Shown here: positions 2,484 to 21,243 of the stretch, one piece after another
Layout: every line of letters starts with the position of its first letter
How positions within the stretch are numbered: the first letter of the stretch is position 1
Sequence record: NC_061446.1
Length of the DNA: 64,000 nt
Reading direction: 5' to 3' (one strand)
Translations under genes and position numbers: made by a program
The notes under the pieces: generated by a model
The model's input: the letters and a program-made list of their open reading frames with translations, nothing else
Told to the model about the DNA's origin: nothing
Database searches by the model: none

Positions 2484-2960
2484 ATGGAAATTTATGTAAG
2501 CCTGAGTCAGGACTCTACAGACAAGAACCGCAACAAGGTATCGAGTCCGGAGTCCAACACCGGCCGCGTTGACGTGTCTGAATATGCGTCACTGGAAAAG
2601 AAACTGCGTCTGCGTGAAGAAGCTGTCGATAAAGAGAAACTCGCTCAGAAGGCTGGTGGCGGGGATTCTGTAAAGGGTAAGAAAGGCGCCAAGAAGAAAG
2701 GCGATGACAAACCCGAAGAAGACGATACTGACATTGATACCGACACTGATACAGATGGAGGCGATGATGATACAGATGACTCTTCCGATGACAGTGGAGA
2801 CGACTCCGATGGAGACGCTAAAGCTAAGAAAGGTGGAAAGAAATCTAACAAGTCTGGAGATGCGGACGACGAAGACGCAGAAGACCCTGACGCAGACGAA
2901 CCCGAAAGTGATGACGGGGATGCAGATGCTGAAAGCATTGATGACGAGGACCTCGAATAG
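2484..2960 (+). CDS. MEIYVSLS-start protein with K-rich and D-rich blocks
   Basis: GAGG SD then ATG 2484. Starts MEIYVSLSQ and has a low-complexity acidic tail. Confidence 0.8.
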   Translation: MEIYVSLSQDSTDKNRNKVSSPESNTGRVDVSEYASLEKKLRLREEAVDKEKLAQKAGGGDSVKGKKGAKKKGDDKPEEDDTDIDTDTDTDGGDDDTDDSSDDSGDDSDGDAKAKKGGKKSNKSGDADDEDAEDPDADEPESDDGDADAESIDDEDLE

Positions 2961-3456
2961 CGATCCTGTCGATGTGCCGAAGACGCACGATGCGATGATC
3001 GAAGTTCTGATCGCTATTCGCTACATGTGCACCAAGCGGATGATCTATCCTGTAGTTGCTGCTACCATAGAACAGCGTAACGACTTTCTGGTGATGAACA
3101 AGCTGACTTTCCAGATGAAGCCAAGTATGTTCTACAGCGCTATTCAGGATAGCAACTGCAAAGTGAATGTGTGTTGGCTTATGCGAGCCTTCACACGCAC
3201 TGCACTGCATTTTGGTCTGATGCCAATCATCGCGGACAGAAGCGGTGACTTCCAGCCTCTGGTGAGTCGCTTCTTCACTCAGGACGATCCTGATTTTGCG
3301 TATCGACGTTTCTATGACGTGCGTAAGCTGCCGTCAGTAACAGACATTCGCAAGCCCCGCCTGTATACGCTTAACGGAGTTAACTATGGCGTACAAGTCA
3401 CAAGCCAAGAAACCGAAGAAGTCAAAAGCTGCGAAAGAAGCAGATACTCGGAATAA
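2941..3456 (+). CDS. hypothetical protein (start uncertain, 2941 or 2995)
   Basis: The globular-looking C-terminal part of the 250-aa ORF. The upstream part is a frame shadow of the previous gene. Confidence 0.6.
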   Translation: MTRTSNSDPVDVPKTHDAMIEVLIAIRYMCTKRMIYPVVAATIEQRNDFLVMNKLTFQMKPSMFYSAIQDSNCKVNVCWLMRAFTRTALHFGLMPIIADRSGDFQPLVSRFFTQDDPDFAYRRFYDVRKLPSVTDIRKPRLYTLNGVNYGVQVTSQETEEVKSCERSRYSE

Positions 3457-4042
3457 GGCACACAAGCAAGCGAAGCGCGGTAAGCTCGCTCAGGCAGTGA
3501 AGACTCTCAGTGCTGCATCTGCCAAATCGCGCCGCATGACTAAAGGTGAGAAACGTGCAATTCAGTTGCAGCCGTTCAAACCTCAGATTGTGCCTCAGCC
3601 TCCGAAAACTCCTCTGATGGAAAAAGGTCTGTCGCTTACTGCGCTTATGCGCTCGACACCTCGCCTGATGAAAGAGAACGCGATGGAGTGTTACGTTAAC
3701 ACTGTGAAACGCGGTAAGACTAACAAAGGTCTGCCGATGATCATGGCTAACGTTCGACACAAAGATCCACTGCGCCCTAATAAAACAGTGCGCATTCACA
3801 AGCCGATGATCATCGGTCTGGATGACCCGTACAAGCCCATCTCAAAACAAAAGCGTGTGCTGGTCAGTTGTCCATGTGAGAACTATGTTTTCATGTGGGA
3901 GTATGCGAACGCCGAACACGGCTGTGCGCGAATCATTTACGGTAATGGCGAACCGCCGGACTTCACTAACCCAGGTCATGCGCCAGGTCTGTGCAAACAT
4001 CTGATGGCTTTGGCCGATCAAGTCAAACGCAATGGAGATTAG
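3386..4042 (+). CDS. SWIM zinc-finger protein with basic N-terminus
   Basis: VSCPCE...GLCKHL is the CxC-xn-CxH SWIM signature. Confidence 0.75.
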   Translation: MAYKSQAKKPKKSKAAKEADTRNKAHKQAKRGKLAQAVKTLSAASAKSRRMTKGEKRAIQLQPFKPQIVPQPPKTPLMEKGLSLTALMRSTPRLMKENAMECYVNTVKRGKTNKGLPMIMANVRHKDPLRPNKTVRIHKPMIIGLDDPYKPISKQKRVLVSCPCENYVFMWEYANAEHGCARIIYGNGEPPDFTNPGHAPGLCKHLMALADQVKRNGD

Positions 4043-4044
4043 TT

Positions 4045-4578
4045 TTGAATATCTTCACATCTGATACGCACTACGGAGCCGAACGCACTCTTCAATTTAG
4101 TCGTCGCCCATTTGGCAGTGTTCTTGAGATGGATAAAACCATGCTCGACCGCTGCAATGAGATAGCTACTGAAAAAGATACACTGTACCACGTAGGTGAC
4201 TTTGGTTCCTATGAGATGGTGCAGCATATCTGTGCGCCTGTCATTTTGATTTGCGGTAACTACGAGATCAATGACATGCACAAACAGTTTGCTTCGGACT
4301 TCGATGCTTTTCGTGCGCACCTGATGCGTTTGGGTTTTGTTGACGTTGTTCGAGACAGTCTGGAAGTGGATGGAATGTATCTCAACCACTACCCAACTAA
4401 GCGCCGCGTTGACCAGTTCAGCCTGTTCGGTCATATTCACGGATTACAGATGGTCAAACGCAATGCGTTAAACGTTGGCGTTGACTGTCATCATTACGCG
4501 CCTGTTGATGCAGAGCGCCTACAGTTCTTCCGTAATGCAATCGAAAATCATTACGACGAAGACGTGTTTGGTTCATAA
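4045..4578 (+). CDS. calcineurin-like metallophosphoesterase
   Basis: DTH, GDF, GN(Y)E, H and GHIH motifs plus NVGVD. TTG start 7 nt after GGAG. Confidence 0.85.
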   Translation: MNIFTSDTHYGAERTLQFSRRPFGSVLEMDKTMLDRCNEIATEKDTLYHVGDFGSYEMVQHICAPVILICGNYEINDMHKQFASDFDAFRAHLMRLGFVDVVRDSLEVDGMYLNHYPTKRRVDQFSLFGHIHGLQMVKRNALNVGVDCHHYAPVDAERLQFFRNAIENHYDEDVFGS

Positions 4579-4587
4579 GGAGATTGC

Positions 4588-4863
4588 ATGTTCTTTAAAA
4601 ATCCTGCCATGGGCGTTGTGCCCAATCAGCCGATCATTCACTCTATTACGGAGATGCACCGCCGTGTTGCAGAACTGAACGGTGAACTGATCGCTGCTGG
4701 CTGTACTGTGGTCGAGAACTGCGGTGAGATGTTGATTGAAGTACCTGCTGGTGCATCTGCCACTGTTGATGGAATTATGCAGCGTCACATCGACATGTTC
4801 AAAGGCCCGATTATCAGCCGCCCTGCGCGTTTGCAAATCGGAGGTGAAGATGCAGAAGCGTAA
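4588..4863 (+). CDS. hypothetical protein
   Basis: AAGGAG SD, 91 aa. Confidence 0.7.
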   Translation: MFFKNPAMGVVPNQPIIHSITEMHRRVAELNGELIAAGCTVVENCGEMLIEVPAGASATVDGIMQRHIDMFKGPIISRPARLQIGGEDAEA

Positions 4864-5284
4864 GTTCGATCCGAACGAACCCTACTCGGTATCGCTGCAC
4901 TTTGGCCCACATATCGTTCACGGTCATGCGCAAGACAGCGCGTTTGGTCAGGTGATGCAGAACATGTTGCTGCGTGAAATCAATAAGACGTGCGACAAGA
5001 TGTTCAAGACTCTGGCTGATGTTCCTGTTGCTGCTGCTCCTACGTTTGACTGTGCCGAAGTAGAGGCAAGCAACATTCTTGCGGCTGTTCAGCGTTGGCA
5101 CGAAATGATTGCCAATGAGCCGCCCGTGAAAGAGTTCGAACCTTGCTTTGTGCCAGACTGGATGCGTCCAGGTCTTCGTGCTAAAGGCATGACTGATGAA
5201 CAGATTGATAAGATCGTTATCACTGGCATCGAGCCTTCGTTTGAGGATCGCCCCGGCATCGTTCTGAGAACGGTGAGCGCCTAA
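4850..5284 (+). CDS. hypothetical protein
   Basis: GGAGG SD before ATG 4850 (MQKRKF). Confidence 0.7.
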   Translation: MQKRKFDPNEPYSVSLHFGPHIVHGHAQDSAFGQVMQNMLLREINKTCDKMFKTLADVPVAAAPTFDCAEVEASNILAAVQRWHEMIANEPPVKEFEPCFVPDWMRPGLRAKGMTDEQIDKIVITGIEPSFEDRPGIVLRTVSA

Positions 5285-5499
5285 TGGCCTGCGCTGGTTG
5301 TGGCCGTCGTAGCTCTCGCATTAGCTATCACGGCGCCTCTGCTCCTCAAGTTGAAATCGAAGAGGACGATACGTTAAGCGCTGCGCGTTTAACTCCAATG
5401 GGTTGGGTACGCACCTGCGTTAAATGCGGGAAAGTATCTGAGCCTTCACCCTTTGCAGAAAACATCAATAAGCCATGTGACTGCACTTTAGACGAGTGA
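5284..5499 (+). CDS. small Cys-rich (zinc-binding) protein
   Basis: CAGC, CVKC and CDC motifs. TAATG coupling to the upstream gene. Confidence 0.6.
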   Translation: MACAGCGRRSSRISYHGASAPQVEIEEDDTLSAARLTPMGWVRTCVKCGKVSEPSPFAENINKPCDCTLDE

Positions 5500-6230
5500 T
5501 CATGATGAACAATCTCGTTGGAACAGCGTGTGCCTTAGACTCCTGCCGCTTCTATGCAGAGAATATGGTGCACATACAATTCGGCAGTTCTCTTTGTCCT
5601 GTGTCGCCTCAACCGCCATACAATCAACCTGTCAATAATCGCAATCTGCATTCGTGGATTGAAAGTATTGAACTGGCGTTTGACAATGCAATCAGTCGTA
5701 CCGATCTGCAATTCCCGTACGCAGGCATTCTCTATCGTTTCCGTTCTATCTACGGGAACTATGTGGCTCAATACCGCGATGACATTTCGGCCGGTCGTCA
5801 GTATCGTGCGAAAGTAGGAACTCCGTTGGATGCGGTGCCAGAGCGGATTGAGGGCGAACATGCGAAAGAGTTTGCTTCCCGCTTCTTCAACTACACGGCA
5901 GGCCAAGTGACCGCGTTCTTATACATGGTCTGTCTCGATCAGTATGCTCGTGAACAAACAGACTGCTATCTGCCTGATCCGCCGCGAGCATTCGATTTGC
6001 CTCAGAACATCTTCAACGAAAGCCCTACCGCTTTCACGAAGACACACGACGTTCTGGTTAACCATCTGATGGAAGCGATGTTGCAGACGCATAGCGATAC
6101 GCTGGACATTCATGTGTCGTTGCGTGATTACGGTCTGTCTGTTATCTTCCCGCTGGTGGCTGAGTGTCGCAATGTGATTTACGCCGCCTGGCCAATCCCT
6201 AACGCCAAAGGACAAAAAGCAAATGTCTGA
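5496..6230 (+). CDS. hypothetical protein
   Basis: 244-aa ORF coupled on both sides. Confidence 0.7.
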   Translation: MIMMNNLVGTACALDSCRFYAENMVHIQFGSSLCPVSPQPPYNQPVNNRNLHSWIESIELAFDNAISRTDLQFPYAGILYRFRSIYGNYVAQYRDDISAGRQYRAKVGTPLDAVPERIEGEHAKEFASRFFNYTAGQVTAFLYMVCLDQYAREQTDCYLPDPPRAFDLPQNIFNESPTAFTKTHDVLVNHLMEAMLQTHSDTLDIHVSLRDYGLSVIFPLVAECRNVIYAAWPIPNAKGQKANV

Positions 6231-6756
6231 TGTTATTCTGTTTGACAATCAGAAAGACTGGGAAGACTTCGGTAGCGCGGTCTACGAAGAATTTCGTCTG
6301 AACGTGATGACAGGCAGTAGCAGCGCCAGTCAGATTCCTACAGTCGCACCGTTCGAAGACGTGAAACACCAACTCAGTTATTCGAACATTCTGCCTGAGG
6401 GTGAGCAATCGCCTATCGTTGTGCTGGACATTCTGGTCATGGAAGTTGAGCTGGCCGAAGGTGAATCTCGCAACTACGACGCAGACAGTCTGGACGAAGC
6501 TGTGCGCAAAGTTGTATCACTGTATCAGGCTCGCGCTCGTGACCTAGAATGCCACCTGACTGGCAACTTCATTACTGCTGATCATAAAGTCAATGGTGCG
6601 CTGTTGCGTATCTACCGCAATCAGGACTTCGTGTGTAAGGGTCATCCTGAACTTCTGCATGGCCGTCCTCTGGGCATGTTCCACTGTGACAAGTGCGGTG
6701 AGATGCAAATGGCTGGAGCATTCCACTTACCCAAAGAGGAAACTCAAAATGGTTAA
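6223..6756 (+). CDS. hypothetical protein with C-terminal zinc ribbon
   Basis: CKGH...HCDKCG near the C-terminus. Confidence 0.7.
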   Translation: MSDVILFDNQKDWEDFGSAVYEEFRLNVMTGSSSASQIPTVAPFEDVKHQLSYSNILPEGEQSPIVVLDILVMEVELAEGESRNYDADSLDEAVRKVVSLYQARARDLECHLTGNFITADHKVNGALLRIYRNQDFVCKGHPELLHGRPLGMFHCDKCGEMQMAGAFHLPKEETQNG

Positions 6757-7216
6757 AGGCGGACTGTGGCGCGTCTTCCCTGATTACGATTCAGAGGAGA
6801 TGTTGCTAAAACTCGGTGCTGCTATCGGCATCGACCGTGACAGTGACGACGTGCCTGATGAATTGCACGTTACTCTGGCTTATGATGAATCGAACCCGGA
6901 CGTTGAAGCAGAGCAAAACGATGCTGGCCAGTTCTTTGGCACCGTTGCTTCTGCTGAACTGTTTGGTGAAGGTCAAGATAAGATTCTGGTGCTCGTACTC
7001 GAATCGCCTGACCTACAACAGGAACACGCTCGTATTCATGCGTGTGGTGCTGCCAAGTTTGCACACACTCCCTATCGCCCGCATGTGACGTTACTCAAAC
7101 ATGCAAAAGACAGCCAAGCTGAATATCTCAACCAGATCATTCAGCATCCGGGACGTCCTCCAATCACTCTGCGCTTCATTGAAGAAGACCGCAAGGTGCT
7201 GGAGAAGCATAGCTAA
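6749..7216 (+). CDS. acb1: 2H phosphodiesterase, T4 gp57B/Acb1-like anti-CBASS nuclease
   Basis: Two HxT motifs (LHVTLAY, YRPHVTL) plus GLW, LVLVLES and H..HACGA segments that mirror T4 57B as recalled (GLY, IHSTICY, LVLVLDS, ALGA, YTPHITL). GAGGA SD. Confidence 0.75.
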   Translation: MVKGGLWRVFPDYDSEEMLLKLGAAIGIDRDSDDVPDELHVTLAYDESNPDVEAEQNDAGQFFGTVASAELFGEGQDKILVLVLESPDLQQEHARIHACGAAKFAHTPYRPHVTLLKHAKDSQAEYLNQIIQHPGRPPITLRFIEEDRKVLEKHS

Positions 7217-7221
7217 AACCT

Positions 7222-7247
7222 AGCGGTGGCCTTGTGCTGCCGCTTTT
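7222..7247 (+). terminator. intrinsic terminator
   Basis: AGCGGTGGC-CTTGT-GCTGCCGCT followed by TTT. Confidence 0.65.
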
Positions 7248-7267
7248 GTCATTCTGGAGAAATTTCT

Positions 7268-7585
7268 ATGGAAATCTATGTAAGCCTTTCCCATGAGATT
7301 CGCGTCGGCCGTCAAGACTCTAATCAAGTTGTTGTGCCTGAAACTACTGATGGCCAGAAACGTGCTGTTGATCAACAAGAGAAAGAACGCATTGTTGAAG
7401 AATATGGCATCGACACTCCTCAGGAAGAGATTGACGAGAAAGAGAAGGAGCGCATTGAGCGCGAAGAGGAGAAGCGCGACGAAAACAAGACCAAAGCACC
7501 GGAAGATTTAGGTCAGCGTAAGCCGGAATCTGAACTCACTGGCTCTGAGATTCAAGACCAGCACGATAACCTGACAAAGATCTAG
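7268..7585 (+). CDS. MEIYVSLS-start protein, highly charged
   Basis: GGAG SD, starts MEIYVSLSH, E/K-rich. Confidence 0.8.
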   Translation: MEIYVSLSHEIRVGRQDSNQVVVPETTDGQKRAVDQQEKERIVEEYGIDTPQEEIDEKEKERIEREEEKRDENKTKAPEDLGQRKPESELTGSEIQDQHDNLTKI

Positions 7586-7589
7586 GAAT

Positions 7590-7597
7590 CTGTAAAT
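7590..7597 (+). promoter_or_regulatory. CTGTAAAT box upstream of sigma factor gene
   Basis: Recurrent intergenic motif. Confidence 0.6.
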
Positions 7598-7630
7598 AAG
7601 AGTCAAAGCAACTAACAGGTGTATTTGACC

Positions 7631-8668
7631 ATGAACAATAAGTCGAATCTCACAGGCGGTCAGATAGAAAGCGTCATGGACACAATGCTTCATGACTGCC
7701 TGCGTGAGATTGTTGAGAACACGGACATATTCGATGTTCAACTGACCTATCTGTTGAACATGATTACGTCGAATAAAAAGCGAAAGCCGTACAACGCTGA
7801 GACGCGTGACCGTGCTATCAGCCTTCTGATTAAGGCGCTGTCTGTGCCTCGCGATCAGAAAATGATTTATATCCAGGAGCTTAAAATGGAGCGTAACTTC
7901 ATTTACGTCTTCCTGGAAAATGTAATTAAGCGATACTACACAACGTATGTAGATCTCTATCGGGGTTTCATTTCGACGCAAGATGCTGTTAAGCGCGAAG
8001 CATATTCGAAACGCCTGAATGCCTACGTGAAGATGTTTGGGGCAGAGTCTCGTTCCAAACTCTTTATCGCGTTGTGTCGTTTGAACGATCTTCTGCCGCA
8101 GTTCATGGAATACTTCCACTCGGTGGTTGCTGACTTCTATAGACTATGCAGCAAGCAAACAAAATTTTATGTTGATACGAACCGCGGTAAGCTGTATGAC
8201 AGCAAAGACGTGCGCCAAAACTTCTTGCGTAACGTTATCGTGGCTATCAACAAGTATGATTCCTCTCGCGGTGCGATTGTGAGTTATACGAAGTGGTGGA
8301 TCTTGAACGCCCAAACCTGTAGTAGCAGCGAGCATGAATACGGCATCGCCTACACTATTCCCCAGACTCAACGTAAGAAACTGGCGACAGGTGAAGATAC
8401 CACTTCTCTGAATTTCTCGGTAAGTCTCGACACTCCTGCGAACGAATCTGATGAAGGTGCGGACGCGTCCCTACATCAAAAAGTGAGTGACCATCATCAC
8501 TTAGAAGATCACGTAGATAGTGAAAGACGTACTGAAAAACTGAGGCTGCTTATTAAGCGCGTAGACCCACTCGGCGTTGCACGATTGACGATGGATGTGG
8601 GTGAGGAGTTCGATAAGTTCGAACTTGATATGATGCGCAAACATATGCAGGCTCAAGGGCTAGCCTAA
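7631..8668 (+). CDS. phage sigma70-like RNA polymerase sigma factor (region 4 truncated)
   Basis: DVRQNFLRNVIVAINKYDSSRGAIVSYTKWWILNAQ...YTIP matches region 2.2-2.4. SVSLDTP...ASLHQKVSD matches region 3.2. Only 76 aa follow SLDTP. Alternative GTG start at 7619. Confidence 0.8.
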   Translation: MNNKSNLTGGQIESVMDTMLHDCLREIVENTDIFDVQLTYLLNMITSNKKRKPYNAETRDRAISLLIKALSVPRDQKMIYIQELKMERNFIYVFLENVIKRYYTTYVDLYRGFISTQDAVKREAYSKRLNAYVKMFGAESRSKLFIALCRLNDLLPQFMEYFHSVVADFYRLCSKQTKFYVDTNRGKLYDSKDVRQNFLRNVIVAINKYDSSRGAIVSYTKWWILNAQTCSSSEHEYGIAYTIPQTQRKKLATGEDTTSLNFSVSLDTPANESDEGADASLHQKVSDHHHLEDHVDSERRTEKLRLLIKRVDPLGVARLTMDVGEEFDKFELDMMRKHMQAQGLA

Positions 8669-8670
8669 AA

Positions 8671-8678
8671 CTGTAAAC
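8671..8678 (+). promoter_or_regulatory. CTGTAAAC box upstream of SSB-recA
   Basis: Recurrent intergenic motif, 39 nt before the ATG. Confidence 0.6.
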
Positions 8679-8717
8679 AGTGATCACATAAGCACAACTC
8701 AATATTGAGGAACAACA

Positions 8718-9980
8718 ATGGCACGTGGATTTGGTGACATTCAAGATAACAGCAAACGCGATAGTTTGCGTGAATCAGAAATCTTTGAAATCTTCCCGCT
8801 GGCGAAGAAAGCAAACGGCAACTGGGTTTCAATTCGTCTGTTAGATCTCGACCTGCTTCCGATTAAGAAGCACTGGATCAAGATCATGGGCGGGAAAGAC
8901 AAAGACAAAGAGATCAAAATCCCGCGCATGTGCGTTAGCTTCGACCCGGACAATCAGAACAAACCTCTGAACGGTATGAAGTGTCCGTACTGCGGCATCG
9001 CTCACGGCAACGACGAATCTGGTGCACCGGCGCAGTACGACTATAAGTGGTACGCACAGGCAATCATTCGTGACGAGCAGGCTGCTGCGCCGCGTAAAAT
9101 GCCGAAGATGACCAAGAAAGAAGAGAAGTCAGGTAAGAAAGAAATGGGCAGCGAGTCTTGGACTCCTGTGCAGTGTATTCCTCTGTCTAACTCTCTGGCT
9201 GGTAAAATCCGCGAGCTGGGTGAACGTAACATTCACACGGTCAAAGATAAAAAGTCTGGCAAGAAGTCTAAGCAGGCATTTCAGGTTAACCATCCGAAGT
9301 ATGGCTGCGATATTGAAATCAAATACAACGCCAAAAAATCTCCAGCAGAGCGTTACACCATCGAACGTGGCGATCATACTCCACTGACGAAAGAAGAACA
9401 GGCGTACCTGACCTGGGACTTCGACAACTGGAACGAAATCTACGACATGCTGGGCCGTCTGAACGAAGAAGCTGCTATGGCTGACTTCAAGAAGATGGAC
9501 GTTATCGGCGTTAACACCAACGATTCTGACGATGGTGATGACGATGACGATGACGACGATGATATGGCGCTGGGCCGCAAAAAGAAAGGCGGCAAAGCGG
9601 ACAAGAAAAAACGTCGCAGCGATGATGACGATGACGACGAAGATGATGACGATGAAGATGATCGTCCGTCCAAGAAGTCTAAAAAGGCGACCAAGTCTCG
9701 TAAAATGTTAGACGATGACGAGGACGACGAAGACGACGAAGACGACGAAGATGATCGTCCGTCGAAGAAAAAGAAATCTTCGAAGGACAAAAAGTCCTCG
9801 AAGGTCAAGTCTAAGAAGTCCAAGAAGTCAGATGATGACGACGAAGACGACGAAGACGAAAAGCCTAAGAAGAAGAAAAAGTCTTCTGACAAGGTGAAGT
9901 CCTCCGTTAAGAAGAAAAAGAAATCTTCTGACGACGATGACGACGACGCGCCGAAGAAAAAGAAGAAAAAGAAAAAGTAA
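8718..9980 (+). CDS. gp32-like single-stranded DNA-binding protein with long D/K block tail
   Basis: IRLL..KHWI..C....CPYC...GCDIEI..Y pattern typical of gp32-family SSBs. Lies directly upstream of recA. The tail is about 150 aa of alternating poly-D/E and poly-K. Confidence 0.65.
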   Translation: MARGFGDIQDNSKRDSLRESEIFEIFPLAKKANGNWVSIRLLDLDLLPIKKHWIKIMGGKDKDKEIKIPRMCVSFDPDNQNKPLNGMKCPYCGIAHGNDESGAPAQYDYKWYAQAIIRDEQAAAPRKMPKMTKKEEKSGKKEMGSESWTPVQCIPLSNSLAGKIRELGERNIHTVKDKKSGKKSKQAFQVNHPKYGCDIEIKYNAKKSPAERYTIERGDHTPLTKEEQAYLTWDFDNWNEIYDMLGRLNEEAAMADFKKMDVIGVNTNDSDDGDDDDDDDDDMALGRKKKGGKADKKKRRSDDDDDDEDDDDEDDRPSKKSKKATKSRKMLDDDEDDEDDEDDEDDRPSKKKKSSKDKKSSKVKSKKSKKSDDDDEDDEDEKPKKKKKSSDKVKSSVKKKKKSSDDDDDDAPKKKKKKKK

Positions 9981-9988
9981 TGTGAAAC

Positions 9989-10015
9989 AGGGTGGCTAAC
10001 GCCACCCTTTCTTTT
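9989..10015 (+). terminator. intrinsic terminator
   Basis: GGGTGGC-TAAC-GCCACCC then TTTCTTTT. Confidence 0.8.
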
Positions 10016-10037
10016 CTCTAATCTGGACCACCAAACA

Positions 10038-12563
10038 ATGGCGAAAACGAACAACAAGGCTGAGAAGAAAGCTGAGAAGAAAGCTAAAGTCAAAGCCGGT
10101 AAGACAAAAGGCAAAGCAGTCGCCTCTGATGATATTGGCGGCGTAGAAGTAGCAGGCTTTGACCTCGGTAGTCTGATGGACGATGTGCTTGACGGCATCG
10201 AAAAGAAAACGAAAGTAAGCTCGCAGGACGCAGCGCGACACGCACCTCGTATCTCTACTGGTGTGCTGGCGCTTGATATGTACCTTGACGGCGGCATCGT
10301 ACCTGGTGGCTGGTACACCTTCAGCGGCGGTGAGCAGTCCTGTAAGTCAACAATGACCATGAGTATCATGGCGAGTCTGATTCGTCTGAAATACTCTGGC
10401 ATTAGCGTAGTGTTCGACTACGAAGGTTCTACCGATGCTGACTACGTTGCTGGCCAGCTCAAAACGTTTGGCGTTACTGTTGACGCGAAGACTATCTTTG
10501 GTGTGCGTGACGGTGATGACGGCAACTGGATTATCAAACCGCGTATTCGCTACTACGCGCCGGACAACGGTGAGCGCTTCTTCGATTATATGTCGATGCT
10601 GCGCCGTCGTCTGCCTGATAAGATCGTCGATAAAGACGGTAGCTCGTACTACATCTTTGAGAACAACAAAGAGAACGCCAAGAAAGTCGCAGGCAAGTAC
10701 GATAAGAAGTGGTTCAGCCGTAACAACCAGTTCAAAGTTCCTGCGTCTGACGGCCACATGCAGGCGATGGTTATCGTTGACTCATATCCTGCAATGATGC
10801 CGGATCAGGTAGATGATGACGATGGCTCAAAAGCAATGGCGCTGCAAGCGCGTATGTTCTCTGACGGCATCAAACGTTTCCGTGGCGGTATGCGTCGTAA
10901 GATGATGACTATCGTTGGCGTTAACCAGTTGCGTCAGAAGCCTGCTGTGATGTTCGGTAGCCCTGAGTATGAGCCTGGCGGTGATGCGTTGAAGTTCTAT
11001 TGCTTCGACCGTGACACTCTGATTCGTACCGACCACGGTGTGATGACTGCACCTGAGATCGCGCAACTGCTGAAAGATGGCGTTAAAGTTTGCGTTGAAT
11101 CGTTCGATGGTTATCAGCAAATCAATGGCGCGTGGAAAGTTGAAGACGCTCCGTTCCCAATCGAACTGACTGCTGGTGGCCATAGCTACATCGGTAGCGC
11201 AGAGCACCGTCAGTTTGTTCTGGTGCCGGGCGTAACTGCTGATGGCACGAACGTGTTTTATCCTGAGTGGCGTACTCTGAACGAGATGGCTACCGGTGGG
11301 CACGAAGGTGTATACGCTGGTCTGCGTGTACCGCCTGTCAAAGAACTGAAACAGAACGTACCTGATGCGTTCGATGATGCGAGCCAGCTGGTAAGTAGCT
11401 TGCTTGCTAACTGCGATCCTGTAAGCGTTCAACTGCCTCTGGCCGCGCAGGGTGATACTACCTATGCGGCGAACGTGCTGACCATTGACGTAGTTGGTGA
11501 GAGCACTGATTCTTCTGACTTCTCGTTCTGGGCCAAGAAGCTGCTGGACATTGGCGTATTCGCTTATGCTGATGAACGTGGTATTCACATGCCTGGTCTG
11601 AACAAGCATGAGCTGGAAGAAGCTGTTGCGCAGAATGCTGATGGTGCGTTCCGCGGTCTGTCTTATGCAGCCACCTGTCGTCAACGTCAAACGCAGATGC
11701 TGATCGCTATCGCTGATCGCTTCCCGGAACTGACTCGCTATGTTCTGGACTATCAGTTACAGGCAGGCGAAGCTAAAATCTATCTGGCGCCGGAGAACGA
11801 TTTTGCCGAAGCGCTCGACCTGATTTTGCATCGTGAGATTGACGGGTATGATGACCTGTATGATCTGCTGATGCAGCAACTGGCTTACGTTGAAGACTGG
11901 TACAACTTCGATAGCTCTATCGTGCCTGTGTTGTTCTCGCTGAAAGTGCTGAACAAAGAAGTTGAGTTCTGGGACGTTAACGTTGCCGAGACTTCTGTGG
12001 TTATCACTAACGGCTTCGTATCGCATAACAGCGACGTGCGTGTTCGTCTGGCTTCTCGTGCAGTGCCCGAAGGTTGGCCGAAACTCAAAGACGCGCCTGG
12101 TGTTGTTGGTGAGAAGTCTGTTACTGTTGATGGAGGTACTGACCGCTATCGTTTCATCGCTGCTAAGACCATCAAGAACAAGATGGGTGGCATCCCGAAC
12201 CAGAGCACGTGGTTGCGTCTGTGGGAAGCTGACGGTAATGGTGAAGCGCGCGGCTTCGACCCGGTGTTCGATACGTGGCACTATCTGAAAGTTCTCGGCC
12301 TGATCAACGGCACACGTAAGAGCTTTAAGATCAAAGCGCCGTGCCCTCTGGCTTCCGAAGTCAAGATGGACTGGGACGACTTCCGTACTCTTATCAACGG
12401 CACCAAGACACAAGTTGTCGATGTGTGTAAGAAGTTGAAAGTCAAACCTGCCGGCCTGCGTCTGTGGTGCTTCAAGTTCGTGCAGTCTGCGAAAGGCAAA
12501 GAAATGTTGAAAGCGTCTATCAGTAAGTCTGCGAAGACTTCTGGTGATGAAGACGACGAGTAA
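10038..12563 (+). CDS. recA: RecA/UvsX recombinase (498-aa extein) interrupted by an intein
   Basis: ISTGVLALDMYLDGG, Walker A GGEQSCKST, VIVDS, ALQARMFS, NQLRQK and PGGDALKFY|SDVRV motifs. Confidence 0.92.
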   Translation: MAKTNNKAEKKAEKKAKVKAGKTKGKAVASDDIGGVEVAGFDLGSLMDDVLDGIEKKTKVSSQDAARHAPRISTGVLALDMYLDGGIVPGGWYTFSGGEQSCKSTMTMSIMASLIRLKYSGISVVFDYEGSTDADYVAGQLKTFGVTVDAKTIFGVRDGDDGNWIIKPRIRYYAPDNGERFFDYMSMLRRRLPDKIVDKDGSSYYIFENNKENAKKVAGKYDKKWFSRNNQFKVPASDGHMQAMVIVDSYPAMMPDQVDDDDGSKAMALQARMFSDGIKRFRGGMRRKMMTIVGVNQLRQKPAVMFGSPEYEPGGDALKFYCFDRDTLIRTDHGVMTAPEIAQLLKDGVKVCVESFDGYQQINGAWKVEDAPFPIELTAGGHSYIGSAEHRQFVLVPGVTADGTNVFYPEWRTLNEMATGGHEGVYAGLRVPPVKELKQNVPDAFDDASQLVSSLLANCDPVSVQLPLAAQGDTTYAANVLTIDVVGESTDSSDFSFWAKKLLDIGVFAYADERGIHMPGLNKHELEEAVAQNADGAFRGLSYAATCRQRQTQMLIAIADRFPELTRYVLDYQLQAGEAKIYLAPENDFAEALDLILHREIDGYDDLYDLLMQQLAYVEDWYNFDSSIVPVLFSLKVLNKEVEFWDVNVAETSVVITNGFVSHNSDVRVRLASRAVPEGWPKLKDAPGVVGEKSVTVDGGTDRYRFIAAKTIKNKMGGIPNQSTWLRLWEADGNGEARGFDPVFDTWHYLKVLGLINGTRKSFKIKAPCPLASEVKMDWDDFRTLINGTKTQVVDVCKKLKVKPAGLRLWCFKFVQSAKGKEMLKASISKSAKTSGDEDDE
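11001..12029 (+). mobile_element. intein (343 aa) in RecA, with an apparently degenerate LAGLIDADG region
   Basis: Begins at Cys (CFDRDTLIRT), has a block B SAEH motif and ends VITNGFVSHN followed by Ser+1. Inserted in GGDALKFY/S, which corresponds to the RecA-b site known from Mycobacterium leprae. Confidence 0.92.
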
Positions 12564-12570
12564 TAAACGT

Positions 12571-12596
12571 GGGAGGGCTTCGGCTCTCCCTTTATT
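12571..12596 (+). terminator. intrinsic terminator
   Basis: GGGAGGGC-TTCG-GCTCTCCC then TTTATT. Confidence 0.8.
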
Positions 12597-12612
12597 CGTG
12601 TAAGGAGAACCA

Positions 12613-13035
12613 ATGCGTACTCAAATCTTTACCGCTGATATTGTTAACCTGCAAACGACCACAACCAACGAAGAAACAGGCGAAGAGATTGTCACACAAA
12701 CAATCGTGCCTAATGTCGAAGGTGAACTGACAATCAGTGTTGGTGAACTGTCTCGTCTGTCTGAAAGCCTGAGCGAGCCTACCGACTCTGACTGTCGCCT
12801 GATTGTTATCGTGTCTCCTGATGCAACGCCGGTCTTCTATGATGAAGCGCTGTCCAGCTACTTCGACCCAATCGAGCGTATCGCTGATATCCAGGCAGGC
12901 AATATCGGTACCATCAACGGTCTGCAAGTCATTCGCGGCCTGCAAGGCGATCACCCTTACGTTGCAGTTGTCGAAGTACGTGACGCTGATACCGTAGAGA
13001 TCGTTCGCTACAACGCGTCTGTAGTAAAACTGTAA
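12613..13035 (+). CDS. hypothetical protein
   Basis: AAGGAG SD, 140 aa. Confidence 0.8.
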   Translation: MRTQIFTADIVNLQTTTTNEETGEEIVTQTIVPNVEGELTISVGELSRLSESLSEPTDSDCRLIVIVSPDATPVFYDEALSSYFDPIERIADIQAGNIGTINGLQVIRGLQGDHPYVAVVEVRDADTVEIVRYNASVVKL

Positions 13036-13037
13036 AT
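13030..13037 (+). promoter_or_regulatory. CTGTAAAT box (overlaps a stop codon)
   Basis: Recurrent motif, here also the Leu codon plus stop. Confidence 0.45.
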
Positions 13038-13089
13038 ACTGATCAACAACCGAACACATTGCTGTGTGTAGTCTCGCCCTATTTGGGCA

Positions 13090-13121
13090 GGGGAGAGCCG
13101 GATGGCCTCCCCATTTTTTTT
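13090..13121 (+). terminator. intrinsic terminator
   Basis: GGGGAG(A)GCC-GGAT-GGCCTCCCC, then A and T8. Confidence 0.8.
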
Positions 13122-13144
13122 GTCTGCGCCAGTAGGAGAACAGC

Positions 13145-14137
13145 ATGTCTCAATCAACACCACAAACGTTTCTCGATCTATTTCTGAAAGACGTTAGAAA
13201 GTTTCTGCCTATGTTTGACAAAGGCCTCGATGCTTACTTCTTGAAATGTAAAGGCAAGCCTGGTCAGTCTGGTGTGTCGTTGCATCAATATCTGAAATGG
13301 TTGAATCCTATAGCCAAACCACCAGAGAACGCGAGCAAACTGGCTGTAGTTATCTCTGGGTATCTGCATTACTTCTGGCAGTTGTCTAAACCCAACTTCG
13401 TATTCGAACCGGTGCTTATGAATCACATGGCTGATTCAGAGCTGCCAGAGACGATACCCGCCGAGATACTGCAACGCCTCCCGTATTGGTGTCAGTGGAT
13501 AACGTTGCCTATCAATCTTGCGACTGCTGGAAATACAATGCGGTTGGACTTTGATGGAGCTTTCGTAGGCTATACTGAGATCGAAAGACGACCAGCGCTG
13601 GTTCTCGTCGCACCTTTTGTTTCTTCTGATGACAGCATCAAAACGAATGGCTTCACACCTTCGGTAACATCTTACGTCTATCTGGATGAACCTGTTAATC
13701 ACCTATCGTTTGTGAAGAACAGCCATCTGCTCAACGTCAGTGACCGAATGCCTGACGTGTTCTTTCGTGAGTTGATGTTTGGCGCATATCACTACCTGAC
13801 AAAGATTGTTAACTGTGTCATGTATATATGCTCACAGCAACAAGCGTTGTACCAAGAAGGTCATTCTCAACCTAAGCCTCAACGTTTAGGCAAAAGCTAT
13901 CGCATCATGCCACCGAAGACTGATCGCATGATCACGGTAGGTGCTGAGATGACCAAGATTCTCAAAGACTTTGAAGCAGAAGTCGAAGCATGTACTCGCG
14001 CTTTCAATGGACGCAAACCGCACATACGAAAAGCGCACTACCATCACTTTTGGACAGGACCGAGGGTAGGTCTTCGTAGCCTCGTCTGCAAGTGGTTGCC
14101 ACCAAGTATTGTTCGCGGCACTATCGTAGAACAATAA
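13145..14137 (+). CDS. conserved phage hypothetical protein
   Basis: 330 aa. The C-terminal PHIRKAHYHHFWTG...KWLPP motif is common in phage proteins of unknown function. Confidence 0.8.
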   Translation: MSQSTPQTFLDLFLKDVRKFLPMFDKGLDAYFLKCKGKPGQSGVSLHQYLKWLNPIAKPPENASKLAVVISGYLHYFWQLSKPNFVFEPVLMNHMADSELPETIPAEILQRLPYWCQWITLPINLATAGNTMRLDFDGAFVGYTEIERRPALVLVAPFVSSDDSIKTNGFTPSVTSYVYLDEPVNHLSFVKNSHLLNVSDRMPDVFFRELMFGAYHYLTKIVNCVMYICSQQQALYQEGHSQPKPQRLGKSYRIMPPKTDRMITVGAEMTKILKDFEAEVEACTRAFNGRKPHIRKAHYHHFWTGPRVGLRSLVCKWLPPSIVRGTIVEQ

Positions 14138-14181
14138 CTTTAACTCAACTCCACGTATGGGCGTTATGCCCGGAGGTCAAT

Positions 14182-14940
14182 ATGTCTCGTGTACAAACTC
14201 TATGGATTCCTGATATGGAATCGTATGAACCTTACATCCGCTCTCTGTGTCATATGGCGCGGGCGCTGGAAAACAATGGACTGAACTACGGCAAGATGAA
14301 GCGTGTCGTGTTCATCGGTCTGTCAAAGCGTAGTGTTGAGTCCTACGTTAAACAGCTTCTCAATTCAAACACGTTGCCGAATACGCTCGTTTGCTTCGGC
14401 ATCGACGAACCACCTGTTAGTCATCGTGAGTTCTCCTTCATCGGTTCGCATGTTGTGCTGATGCACGACCTGACATATGCAGGAGACAACGCGATGGGCC
14501 GCGTGTCGCAGCGTGTTCTCGAAATCATCCTGAGCCTGAAACAAAAGCCTGAGGATCGTGAACTTAAAAACGGTGCGCTATCTCTTGTGTATCAGAACCC
14601 GATGCTGTGGTCCTATATCAGAGACAACGGCGCCAGCATGTACAACCACAACCCACGTATTCAATACGCAGAAGGTCTGGTATCGTCTATTGGCGTTGAG
14701 CAACTCATGTCCTGCAAAGACAACGAAGACTATCACAAGCTCCACGCACCTGTTATTACGATCGGCCTGGAGTTCTTCCACGTCAAGCCTGATGAATTGC
14801 TTGCGCGACTCTGCAACCTGATGTGGTCACTCGGATCAACCACCAGCGAGTTTAAGGACAATTATAAGATCGTGCTGCATGACGACTTCCGCCTCGCTTT
14901 CTTCGAAGAATTTCTGCTGAGAGAGTTTAAGGGGTTTTAA
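14182..14940 (+). CDS. hypothetical protein
   Basis: GGAGG SD before ATG 14182. Confidence 0.8.
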   Translation: MSRVQTLWIPDMESYEPYIRSLCHMARALENNGLNYGKMKRVVFIGLSKRSVESYVKQLLNSNTLPNTLVCFGIDEPPVSHREFSFIGSHVVLMHDLTYAGDNAMGRVSQRVLEIILSLKQKPEDRELKNGALSLVYQNPMLWSYIRDNGASMYNHNPRIQYAEGLVSSIGVEQLMSCKDNEDYHKLHAPVITIGLEFFHVKPDELLARLCNLMWSLGSTTSEFKDNYKIVLHDDFRLAFFEEFLLREFKGF

Positions 14941-15016
14941 GACTATTCTGAGTTTCGTCATTAATTTCTCCAAGTTAGCAAGAAGTGCTGACTAAATAGT
15001 TATTTGGAGAAATAAC

Positions 15017-15277
15017 ATGTGCGAACGTAGCCTCGTACGGTTGAAGTACATCGCACGGTCATCGAACTGGTGCAATAATAAAGTAAACGCTTGTAGTAAG
15101 CGGAAGGCGACGAACGTACAATGCGAAGATTTTTTAGCAGTAACAAAAGATTGTCGCAGTGTGCAGGACTCGTCCAATGTTGTTTCCTTCTTCAAAGGCC
15201 AAGAGCTGGTGGGTCAAGCTGTTTGGCAAGAGAAGAAGGGAGAACACATACTTCAATTCCGACTACTACTCGCATAA
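15017..15277 (+). CDS. hypothetical Cys-containing protein
   Basis: GGAG SD, 86 aa. Confidence 0.55.
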   Translation: MCERSLVRLKYIARSSNWCNNKVNACSKRKATNVQCEDFLAVTKDCRSVQDSSNVVSFFKGQELVGQAVWQEKKGEHILQFRLLLA

Positions 15278-15336
15278 CTTTCCTAATAGGGCTATCAGAG
15301 CAATCTGGTGGCCCTTCTTCATTTCTAGGAGCTGTC

Positions 15337-15603
15337 ATGCCGTACCACCTGCAACTGCAAGAGAAACACTTTAGAGCTATTGAAGACCATGCAGATCAAA
15401 TCATCGGTCTGTCTGCTTTGGTATCGAAGTTAGCTGAGGACGATATTGTCGTTGTCAATGTGTCCGTGTCGCGTCCACAAGACGCGGGTGTTCCCATTAC
15501 CGTTGTTCGTGACGGCTGCGAGCGATACTTGGAGGTGCAAAGAGCGCCGTGGCCTATCTCACCTGATTCACCTTCTATCGAAATAGCAATCGTTCAATAC
15601 TGA
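15337..15603 (+). CDS. hypothetical protein
   Basis: AGGAG SD before ATG 15337 (MPYHLQ). Confidence 0.7.
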   Translation: MPYHLQLQEKHFRAIEDHADQIIGLSALVSKLAEDDIVVVNVSVSRPQDAGVPITVVRDGCERYLEVQRAPWPISPDSPSIEIAIVQY

Positions 15604-15608
15604 CGCTT

Positions 15609-15633
15609 AGGCTGCCCTCGTTGGCGGCCTTTT
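15609..15633 (+). terminator. intrinsic terminator
   Basis: AGGCTGCC-CTCGTT-GGCGGCCT then TTT. Confidence 0.65.
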
Positions 15634-15683
15634 CTATTTCTATGCTAATTTCATCTTGCATTCACTCGCACTGGAGAGACACT

Positions 15684-16334
15684 ATGGAAATCTACGTTTC
15701 ACTATCGAAGCAGGAAGAACCGCCGATAGTAACAGAGATCGACCAAAAGGCGCCTCGCATTAATGACAACAGCAAAGTGGGCCAAGTATTCGACGTTCAC
15801 GTTCTACAGCAAATGAGTTACCTCGATATGAAGAACATTCGTGGTGACGCAGGAGCGAAGTACGCCAAAGCTATTGCTGATTGGCTCAATAGTCAGAGGT
15901 CGATCGACAATAAGTTTCGCGTATCAAACAGAAGTAAAATCTCGATTGCTGTAAAGAATACGCAACAGTTGGCTGCGCGTTATCGCAACATCTATCTGTT
16001 AAGTCCTGAAAGCAATAAAGATCGCTGCTGGTTGCTGGTGGGTGAAGGCCCGCACGACAACAAGCAGACTGTGGAGATTGGTCGGAGTCTTCAAATGGAT
16101 GTGCTATATGCTTCCGTTCGTACTATGCTTGCGTCACACTTACCGACCGACGAGTGGCCAGGCGACAATACATACGAACATGTTCAATTGGAGTTGGACA
16201 AACGGGGCAAACATGGTGGTCGCGTGACTAAGCGTCATTACACGTTTGCAAAAGAAAATGAAAATACACTGATCACGATGATGCAGGACGGGTTGTCCAT
16301 TGCAGAAATCACCGATTGGGTTCTGAAACAGTAA
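15684..16334 (+). CDS. MEIYVSLS-start protein
   Basis: GGAG SD, starts MEIYVSLSK. Confidence 0.8.
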   Translation: MEIYVSLSKQEEPPIVTEIDQKAPRINDNSKVGQVFDVHVLQQMSYLDMKNIRGDAGAKYAKAIADWLNSQRSIDNKFRVSNRSKISIAVKNTQQLAARYRNIYLLSPESNKDRCWLLVGEGPHDNKQTVEIGRSLQMDVLYASVRTMLASHLPTDEWPGDNTYEHVQLELDKRGKHGGRVTKRHYTFAKENENTLITMMQDGLSIAEITDWVLKQ

Positions 16335-16343
16335 GAGGAATCT

Positions 16344-17594
16344 ATGTCCCTGATTAAAATCGAAGGCATTGCATCCACATCTGCTCCGACCAAGGCGCAG
16401 AAAGATGCTGCCGTTTATTTGTTTGGCTCCAAAGGTCATTCAATCGTTGCAGTGCTCGACAAATTCAGTCGCGCCAAAGAACTGCGTACAGCTCACCTTG
16501 ACGGTCTGCTCAAGCTGATGAAAGAAGGCGAAGATGACGAGATCATCAAGTTCGCTGCGTCAACTCCAGGCAAGAAAACAATCGCTAACGCCAAGGCCTT
16601 TGCTGTGGCAAAGACTCTGACTGCTGCGATCAAAGCGCTGAAACTGATCCGTGTACCTGTTAAGTGGGTAGAAGGTCATTCTGATGCGGCTGCTGCTCGT
16701 GCTCAGGAGACTAAAGAGATTCGCGCACGTAAGACTGCGGGTAATAAGCCTGAGAAGCCTATCAAGCTCGACAACCCAGGTGCACCGGAAGCGGAAGATG
16801 TAAGTCCGGCCGCATTGTTTGATGCCGCATTGAAAAACAAAAACAAAGCGCCGTTCGAGGCTGTCAACAAAGCAGTTGCAGCCTCCGTAAAACAGTTTGG
16901 TCTGAAAACTGAACTGGACCTAAGCAAGCGCGGTAAGGCGATGATTCTGATTAAGCTGGGTCGCGGTATCGAAGGCACAATCACCTTCCCATCAAATACG
17001 CGTAAGCTCGATTGGCCTCACGATGATCCGAACCAGTTCTATCTCTCTGCTCAGAATGCCGAAGAGATGGATGTTGTTATGGACTACGTGCCGGCAACTT
17101 TCAAGAACGCGCCAAAGACTATTGCCAAAGCATTCGAATCTCTGTGGGAAAAAGCAATGCGCGGTGAGAACGGTGACTTACCTGTATCTCGCCCTGGTAA
17201 GAAGGCTACTCGCACAAAAAAGTCTGAGCCCGCTGCTAATCCTAAGGCGCCTCTGCCCTACACGCCGTCTGGTAAATCCGACATCACTTTGGTGGACGAA
17301 CTGGCAGAAGTTACAGCACGTAAAATCTCTGCTAAACCTTTGCAGGCGCGTGAGGAATATTTCAATGCCCTGCGTAACACTCTGCATTCCAATCTGCGCA
17401 ATTCTGTAGTCAACACTACATCTGACGGTGTGACTGTAGCTATGGGCAGCAAGCTGTATACAATCCGTCTGGCCGACAATACGTGGACCATTCAGACTGG
17501 TGCTACAGGTAAGCCGAAGAAGATTGGTGCAACGTTCGATATTGTTGACGTGCTTGGCATGATCGATAAAAGCATTTTGCGCCCTAAAGGGTAA
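16344..17594 (+). CDS. K/A-rich hypothetical protein
   Basis: GAGGA SD, 416 aa, basic and Pro-rich linkers. Confidence 0.8.
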   Translation: MSLIKIEGIASTSAPTKAQKDAAVYLFGSKGHSIVAVLDKFSRAKELRTAHLDGLLKLMKEGEDDEIIKFAASTPGKKTIANAKAFAVAKTLTAAIKALKLIRVPVKWVEGHSDAAAARAQETKEIRARKTAGNKPEKPIKLDNPGAPEAEDVSPAALFDAALKNKNKAPFEAVNKAVAASVKQFGLKTELDLSKRGKAMILIKLGRGIEGTITFPSNTRKLDWPHDDPNQFYLSAQNAEEMDVVMDYVPATFKNAPKTIAKAFESLWEKAMRGENGDLPVSRPGKKATRTKKSEPAANPKAPLPYTPSGKSDITLVDELAEVTARKISAKPLQAREEYFNALRNTLHSNLRNSVVNTTSDGVTVAMGSKLYTIRLADNTWTIQTGATGKPKKIGATFDIVDVLGMIDKSILRPKG

Positions 17595-20622: not shown

Positions 20623-21243
20623 ATGACTATGCACATCACTACTTTCTTTGTTAAACGTTCTTACGCTTCTCTGGCTGCTGGTTCATTCACTATCGGCGCC
20701 AAGCAAGTGCAAGAGCTGGTGGAATCTGAAATCTTCATCGTGTACGCAAACACGGGACTGGGCAACGCATTCGCCGTACGCAACATCACTCTGACGCCTG
20801 TTGATGAAGCAAACGTGCGTGTTGAGTTCGACCCGCTGACCGACGTTCACGCAATGCCGTCTAGTGTTCTGCCCAAAGAGAGTCTGACTGAAAGCACACA
20901 GCAATATCTCATGGCGCCGGATGACGTGGCCGCTGCCCCTCGCTTCTGCGTATCTAACCACGCATCTGGCAACGAGCCGAACATGTTGTGTCTGAATCAT
21001 GACGTGCGTGAACGCCTGATTCAATATAAGGGCGGCATGATCAGCCTGACAGAGCTGGTACTTGTGCTTCACGACCAAGATATTTCAGTGACCGACATTC
21101 ATCAACATCGTCGCAACAAAGAGAAGTACGTGGCGCAGATCACAGAGCGCACCTCACACGTTATCGAACTGTCGAAAGACAACGGCGTTAAGCAGCACGA
21201 TAGCGACTTCCCGTTGCTTGCTCGCCTGAACGTGTATCTCTAA
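20623..21243 (+). CDS. hypothetical protein
   Basis: 206-aa ORF. The N-terminus contains SYASLA. Confidence 0.75.
   Translation: MTMHITTFFVKRSYASLAAGSFTIGAKQVQELVESEIFIVYANTGLGNAFAVRNITLTPVDEANVRVEFDPLTDVHAMPSSVLPKESLTESTQQYLMAPDDVAAAPRFCVSNHASGNEPNMLCLNHDVRERLIQYKGGMISLTELVLVLHDQDISVTDIHQHRRNKEKYVAQITERTSHVIELSKDNGVKQHDSDFPLLARLNVYL

Follow-up and report, generated by a model that had tools for sequence, protein, structure and literature searches.

In phage T4, a short peptide sends a set of accessory proteins into the head. This capsid targeting sequence, carried by the internal proteins IPI, IPII and IPIII (Alt is also packaged and processed), is about 8–10 residues long and lies at the extreme N-terminus of unrelated, fast-evolving accessory proteins. 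It ends in Glu, within the consensus of the prohead protease, and this consensus is over-represented in the scaffold. Here we describe an N-terminal peptide of a different phage group that resembles the T4 sequence in several respects. It was noticed as the octapeptide MEIYVSLS, with which three genes begin in a stretch of 64,000 nucleotides (positions 186001–250000 of NC_061446.1, called the window below) of Erwinia phage pEa_SNUABM_30 (pEa30; Alexandravirus; genome 259,771 bp). The first 20 kb of the window match record positions 186001–206000 at 100% identity. Among jumbo phages of Erwinia and Dickeya, AD1, Alexandra and many pEa_SNUABM isolates are related to pEa30 with 80–97% DNA identity. 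The best explanation we have, judging from sequence comparisons, is that the Lu11/PaBG/Y3/Alexandra jumbo phages use a sorting peptide of eight residues, confined to the N-terminus, of which MEIYVSLS is one variant. We call this peptide the tag; it takes the form M-x-phi-x-phi-S-L-S in enterobacterial phages and M-x-V-x-I-A-L-A in Lu11-like phages.

Like the T4 sequence, the tag is short and sits at the very start of unrelated accessory proteins, and in both cases the carriers are small accessory enzymes and charged proteins. In T4 the end of the peptide recurs in the scaffold; here the terminal tripeptide class of the tag is over-represented in a scaffold-like protein, gp138. There are also clear differences. 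The tag belongs to an unrelated lineage, with an HK97-type capsid protein of 366 aa and a separate acidic scaffold, and its packaging and cleavage are proposals. It is strand-like and ends in Ser-Leu-Ser, and the protease of the group has no detectable similarity to T4 gp21.

Other known systems are further away. The propeptides of phiKZ- and SPN3US-like giant phages are long, variable stretches whose only defining feature is a small-x-Glu cleavage site. These phages have many proteins that lie inside the head or are ejected, matured by the prohead protease through removal of N-terminal segments (PMC5694885, PMC7411985, PMC10052503). In contrast, the tag is fixed at eight residues, lies at the very N-terminus, and ends in Ser-Leu-Ser with no small-x-Glu. 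Encapsulin cargo-loading peptides, which are short, joined by a flexible linker and bring unrelated enzymes into an HK97-fold shell, have a small and hydrophobic core with Ser/Gly-Leu. They are usually C-terminal, remain uncleaved and bind the shell directly, whereas the tag is N-terminal and its docking to the capsid is only proposed. In Staphylococcus phage 80alpha, the capsid and scaffold proteins share an N-terminal leader that copies the leader of ribosomal protein L27 and is cut by the host protease Prp. That leader imitates a host protein and is limited to capsid and scaffold; the tag, in contrast, is found on about 3% of the proteome, mostly on accessory proteins, and has no known counterpart in the host. 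A hydrophobic core of at least 10 residues, a twin-Arg motif and a lipobox Cys, the marks of Sec, Tat and lipoprotein signals, are absent from the tagged N-termini: polar or charged residues follow directly after the eight residues, and there is neither a Cys nor an Arg-Arg. No description of such a tag turned up in the searchable literature, which agrees with the preliminary description of this DNA.

The three starts in the window hold up (Table 1). Each lies 6–9 nucleotides behind a Shine-Dalgarno (SD) site (GAGG or GGAG), and the first codons share the pattern ATG GAA ATY TAY GTW. The three proteins, gp224, gp234 and gp243, are annotated as hypothetical in RefSeq and show no similarity to each other beyond residue 8, as had been claimed. 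Two of the three are acidic and low-complexity. The count of three tagged proteins, however, was too low. When the whole genome was scanned at every possible start, at least eight tagged proteins emerged (gp117, gp188, gp190, gp200, gp201, gp224, gp234 and gp243). Those outside the window set, at least five, follow the pattern M-x-I-x-[VI]-S-L-S. For gp188, the earlier worry that the true starts might lie upstream is answered by an in-frame stop two codons before the start. We also built a position matrix from 36 distinct tags and scored it over 335 called open reading frames (ORFs) of pEa30, a set from which gp224 with its identical octapeptide is missing. Seven of the 335 ORFs score 20.6–23.4 bits, all at residue 2, and nothing else exceeds 20 bits; gp212 reaches 12.3 bits, gp117 10.1 and the top internal match in the proteome 10.7. 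Because high scores are confined to residue 2, the tag is strictly N-terminal and includes the initiator Met.

A search for the motif among relatives, which the preliminary description had proposed, found further carriers in Y3, Yoloswag, JA11 and Yersinia phage fHe-Yen9-02, and tagged proteins number in the dozens across the group. The related Yersinia phage is not phiR1-37. In each of these four phages, between four and eight proteins of the syntenic 24-kb region start with M-x-[ILV]-x-[IV]-S-[LMI]-S, and the same pattern occurs at 19 IMG/VR loci. An exact search for one coding version in 2.9 million IMG/VR contigs matched 10 contigs, all from this phage group. Scanning IMG/VR with the clamp loader added almost no diversity.

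The DNA that encodes the tag is far more variable than the peptide. Among 57 distinct coding versions, all six Ser codons occur at Ser6 and again at Ser8, and all six Leu codons occur at Leu7. Selection therefore acts on the peptide, a conclusion that had been drawn from three genes and is now borne out more strongly. Hydrophobic residues occupy positions 3, 5 and 7 of the peptide, Ser occupies positions 6 and 8, and position 4 is nearly free (Y, F, L, M, V, Q, K or E). A beta-strand that is constrained on both of its faces shows such a pattern. The constraint ends abruptly: residue 9 can be K, A, R, Q, H, S, V, D or N.

The tag also behaves as a module. In homologues of gp243 (57–99% identity) the tag is kept, insertions and deletions fall just behind it and the linker varies in length. 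The Nudix hydrolase gp117 of pEa30 consists of the tag, a 16-residue linker and the fold; the PaBG Nudix protein lacks both tag and linker and begins at the point where the fold begins in pEa30. Carriers are often lineage-specific, and for many of those in relatives pEa30 has no homologue. Among the latter are a weak GNAT acetyltransferase match (E about 1e-3 to 4e-3), a protein that resembles kinases by a GxxGxGKS motif read off the sequence only, a domain (phrog_21376, 1e-27) known otherwise from within giant phage proteins of many domains, and Lys-rich proteins. The tagged set looks like a collection of exchangeable accessory proteins with only an address in common. We conclude that the tag is real, strictly N-terminal, selected at the peptide level, modular and clade-wide.

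What is the address? We put the probability at roughly 45% that the tag is a prohead-targeting propeptide that works like the T4 capsid targeting sequence and evolved independently in an HK97-type jumbo lineage. In this scenario the alternating hydrophobic residues would form a short beta-strand on a flexible linker. The strand would dock on a component of the prohead core, possibly gp138, the capsid interior or the protease gp140, and docking would build the attached protein into the head. The small-Leu-small end of the tag might then be read by the prohead protease, which would cut off the tag and also cut up the scaffold; this removal of the tag, suggested by analogy with T4, is a less certain part of the proposal. 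The cargo would remain with the DNA and would probably be delivered to the next host. Such cargo would include a Nudix hydrolase, enzymes resembling acetyltransferases and kinases, and both Lys-rich and acidic disordered proteins.

Indirect support for this scenario comes from the head module. Its genes run in the order protease gp140, gp139, gp138, gp137, capsid protein gp136. The protein gp138 has Cys-x-x-Cys pairs and an Asp/Glu run of about 150 residues, and is conserved from pEa30 to Lu11. Annotated as ribosomal-like in PaBG, it is called an 'ATPase' in pEa30, JA11, Yoloswag and Lu11, but it has no ATPase features. Because of its gene position and composition, gp138 looks like a scaffold or core protein rather than an ATPase. 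It contains eight [AS]LS tripeptides, where 1.16 are expected from its own composition (p = 3e-5, to be read with the caveat that the enrichment was spotted before it was tested) or 0.69 at the proteome rate, and ranks first of 335 ORFs. When every tripeptide of gp138 was scanned, ALS came out near the top of those without acidic residues. One site, Q-L-V-S-L-S-R, resembles the tag itself and is conserved in JA11, Yoloswag, PaBG and Lu11. As a yardstick, the known gp21 cleavage motif occurs 16 times in the T4 scaffold gp22 (5.7 expected, p = 3e-4), with little or no enrichment in the T4 non-head proteins tested. The N-terminal extension of the HK97-type capsid protein was compared between five phages: four share L-A-L-S there, and JA11 reads R-I-L-S. 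PHROGs classes gp140 as a head maturation protease (phrog_18299, E = 6e-126), and the protein has an invariant His and Ser, a zinc-ribbon insert and an N-terminus that carries S-x-S-F.

Divergent relatives add a second line of support. An IMG/VR scan with the capsid-protein alignment gave 79 loci with identities down to 33%. Tags in Lu11/PaBG-like phages are mostly M-x-V-x-I-A-L-A, and some of the tagged genes belong to the head module. A gene for a tagged 120-aa protein lies directly upstream of the scaffold gene in Lu11 and in eight or more metagenomic relatives, and the A-L-A type of tag is also found on proteins of 157, 164, about 540 and 603 aa. The gp142 family, adjoining the protease gene, is tagged in Yoloswag, PaBG and two metagenomic phages. 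Lu11-like scaffolds are enriched in A[LI]A (8 versus 1.6 expected in Lu11, 5–7 versus 1.2–1.7 in others) and not in [AS]LS; scaffolds of the enterobacterial clade show the opposite. The protease N-terminus reads A-T-A-F in Lu11-like phages and S-x-S-F elsewhere. Tag, scaffold sites and protease N-terminus thus shift in the same direction, which fits a single reader, most simply the prohead protease. These observations support the T4 analogy of the preliminary description indirectly and make it plausible, although a protease without similarity to gp21 is not what that analogy would lead one to expect.

Several observations weigh against head loading. A profile of 13 gp140-family sequences aligned to T4 gp21 with hhalign gives a probability of 0.2%, that is, no detectable similarity, and searches of PDB sequences with gp140 and with the same profile return spurious zinc-finger matches only. 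The shift from Ser to Ala could reflect base composition instead of co-evolution, and it is seen in only two or three independent clades. That virion proteins of PaBG undergo proteolytic processing speaks for the proposal, but the mass of the PaBG capsid protein is reported to fall by about 20% (PMC7412058). Cutting at the conserved L-A-L-S, near residue 33, would account for only about 9%, and residues 70–90, where a loss of 20% would place the cut, contain no small-Leu-small site. Because of this misfit, the tripeptide is unproven as a cleavage site; it may be a binding motif instead, or one of several sites. The gel-band virion proteome of PaBG lists 14 proteins (PMC7412058), none with this tag; three of unassigned function that were checked, gp191, gp261 and gp263, lack it. 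Very acidic cargo is unusual within a DNA-filled head. The AlphaFold2 models are uninformative: that of gp243 (alignment of six sequences) has a strand at residues 2–8 and disorder at residues 9–37 with low confidence, and both it and that of gp188 (nine sequences) have a mean predicted local distance difference test score of about 50. Finally, the three window genes lie in a replication and recombination setting, not a structural one, with genes for a Cas4-like nuclease, an RNA ligase, a sigma factor, SSB and a UvsX-like recombinase as neighbors.

A bolder reading, which we regard as unlikely, extends head loading itself: the tag would be a portable, self-sufficient signal whose strand is added into the HK97-type prohead core, so that any fused protein would be packaged and delivered to the next host, or else it would belong to a wholly new, non-capsid N-terminal sorting route. 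Of the rival explanations the strongest, though also unlikely, is an uncleaved docking motif that would recruit accessory proteins, by beta-strand addition, to a hub other than the capsid, such as the phage's own sliding clamp, its replisome or its transcription machinery. Such a motif would suit the neighbors of the window genes, the position of gp200 and gp201 next to the clamp-loader gene and the DNA polymerase III beta-like clamp that the group encodes (PaBG gp207). E. coli Hda has a clamp-binding motif at its N-terminus, and the hydrophobic-Ser-Leu core of the tag loosely recalls such motifs. Yet Gln-Leu is missing from the matching positions of the tag, and in 36 of 36 distinct tags Ser replaces the terminal aromatic residue. 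The polymerase, ligase, helicase and other annotated replication enzymes carry no tag, a docking motif does not need a strict N-terminal position that includes Met1, and the scaffold enrichment and the tagged genes of the head module would be left unexplained. We find less probable again a reading in which the tag is a cytoplasmic degradation or processing signal that sets the lifetime or activation of accessory proteins, with no packaging. Its reader would be a host protease or the phage peptidase gp207 ('peptidase', phrog_17197), which is conserved and encoded near several tagged genes. The tag is exposed, N-terminal and hydrophobic in character, with a disordered linker behind it, and many carriers are small accessory proteins. 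However, Met followed by Glu, Gln or Lys matches no known N-degron, gp207 matched no curated (NCBIfam) family, and neither the scaffold enrichment in the same tripeptide class nor the co-change of tag and scaffold would follow.

Two further readings seem very improbable to us. Conservation might reside in the mRNA, where the 5' ends of the genes would hold an element for translation initiation, a site for a repressor or a recombination joint. Codons 1–5 are alike in DNA across the three window genes, codon 2 is usually A-rich (GAA, AAA or CAA), and several tagged genes share the SD sequence CTGGAG right after a terminator-like hairpin. The codon usage at Ser6, Leu7 and Ser8 speaks against this, since it includes switches between AGY and TCN that need at least two base changes, and the upstream regions are otherwise unrelated. 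We give just as little credence to the idea that the tag is the first strand of a small common fold and its carriers are distant paralogues. The sequences of gp234, gp190 and gp201 do stay alike for a few residues past the tag (SLS-H-E-I-R-V-G, SLS-R-E-V-Q-M-G and SLS-K-I-T-V-G), but what follows the tag in general is unrelated (low-complexity acidic sequence, a Nudix fold, coiled coils, Lys-rich sequence). The length of the linker varies, and the Nudix orthologue of PaBG does without the tag.

Table 1. Tagged genes and related features; positions count from the start of the window unless given as record (NC_061446.1) or locus coordinates.
Feature	Position	Strand	Remarks
Tag of gp224	2484..2507	+	MEIYVSLS, first 8 codons; AD1 and Alexandra orthologues keep MEIYVSLS
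gp224, tagged	2484..2960	+	158 aa, extremely acidic, low-complexity; Asp/Thr and Asp/Ser runs, Lys patches
Tag of gp234	7268..7291	+	MEIYVSLS, first 8 codons; orthologues MEIFVSLA (AD1), MEMIVSLS (Alexandra)
gp234, tagged	7268..7585	+	105 aa, Glu/Lys-rich; between RNA ligase and sigma-factor genes
Tag of gp243	15684..15707	+	MEIYVSLS, first 8 codons; 5 homologues (57-99% identity) keep tag (MKILVSLS, MEILISLS, MQISISFV)
gp243, tagged	15684..16334	+	216 aa; tag, polar linker of about 30 residues, conserved C-terminal two-thirds
gp244	16344..17594	+	possible carrier of second, related motif (MSLIKIEGIASTSA; Alexandra ...GVQSLSA)
Terminator-like hairpins	7224-7262; 15608-15640		GC-rich, with T-run
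gp117			MMINVSLS; Nudix hydrolase
gp188			MQIFVSLS; TTG start
gp190			MQIYVSLS
gp200			MKILISLS
gp201			MEIFVSLS
gp212			MTRIKISLS; form longer by one residue
gp138	record 104805-106820, outside window (locus L005:4805-6820)	-	671 aa, acidic, between capsid and protease genes
gp130	record 98338-99012	-	MLILLSES
JA11 gp121	L013:11556		MLFFVSVS
Tagged gp142-family genes	Yoloswag L015:264-1268; PaBG L117:44714-46105; metagenomic L067:1914, L096:3081
Yoloswag gp200	L011:11989-12474		orthologue of tagged gp201 family
Alexandra gp243	L008:8668-9033		orthologue of pEa30 gp234
gp189, second-motif start	record 163585
PaBG gp83, gp219, gp220, second-motif starts	L014:2703; L117:41296; L117:41730

Searches of curated families and PDB sequences with the three window proteins returned nothing useful. 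Only gp224 has a PHROG match (phrog_30142, function unassigned), and gp234 matches neither PHROGs nor NCBIfam. In gp224 the Asp-Thr and Asp-Ser repeats are interspersed with Lys-Lys-Gly patches, a composition reminiscent of DNA-mimic or polyanionic proteins. A Tyr-Arg-Gly motif in gp188 had suggested an ADP-ribosyltransferase; the idea is unsupported, with no match in NCBIfam, PHROG or PDB and homologues in close relatives only. The protein gp190 and the very Lys-rich gp189 (record 162455-164197) correspond to one protein of about 550 aa in fHe-Yen9-02 and Yoloswag, and in Alexandravirus they are either a split gene or two genes.

Some gene starts in relatives deserve attention. The annotated start of Alexandra gp243 (MCCRF...) lies 12 codons upstream of the tag start, which has its own GGAG; the upstream start is probably wrong. 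Yoloswag gp200 is annotated from an internal Met, and the frame upstream has no ordinary tag start, so either the tag was lost or the start codon is unusual. The tagged extension of the gp142 family is Lys-rich and lies ahead of the annotated starts, in a frame that shares DNA with the 3' end of the glycosyltransferase gene upstream. For gp142 of pEa30 itself we rejected a tag; the upstream frame is not conserved there. The GC-rich hairpins with T-runs listed in Table 1 have counterparts before gp200 and gp201. Such a hairpin directly precedes the SD sequence CTGGAG of several tagged genes, which may begin their own transcription units or follow attenuators.

Tag-like N-termini may not be confined to head cargo. 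The gene for gp130 lies between two tail-tube paralogues, and its product, like JA11 gp121, has a tag-like start in which the middle residue varies. PaBG gp262, a protein of 990 aa in the tail region, starts with MYIPVSLA.

There is also a second N-terminal motif, M-x-L-I-K-I-[NE], on the unrelated proteins gp244, gp189 and PaBG gp83, gp219 and gp220. The preliminary description had listed the start at 16344 as a looser variant of the tag; it belongs to this second motif. Another supposed variant, SYASLA at 20623, is unsupported, with no recognizable counterpart at the syntenic position in AD1 or Alexandra. Mass spectrometry places PaBG gp83 in the virion (PMC7412058), and the gp83 gene adjoins the scaffold gene. 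The start of gp212 resembles a hybrid of both motifs.

Some consequences concern annotation: the 'ATPase' gp138 would be better described as scaffold- or core-like, and several starts annotated in relatives are in the wrong place. Should the tag turn out to be a docking motif or a degron, it would still be a signal that is shared across the clade, marks the N-terminus of about 3% of the proteome and is undescribed in the searchable literature. If the portable-signal reading were true, changeable enzymes and charged proteins would act before phage gene expression, and the group would possess a second, independently evolved loading system with a chemistry unlike that of T4. If the tag directs proteins into the head, the set of packaged and injected proteins could be read from sequence for the whole jumbo group, whose members infect Erwinia, Dickeya, Yersinia and Pseudomonas and which has many further members in metagenomes. 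The tag would point to the first-acting counter-defence proteins of the group and would offer a very short handle for placing chosen proteins in large phage heads. It would also be an independent example of the T4 principle in the HK97-type capsid lineage.

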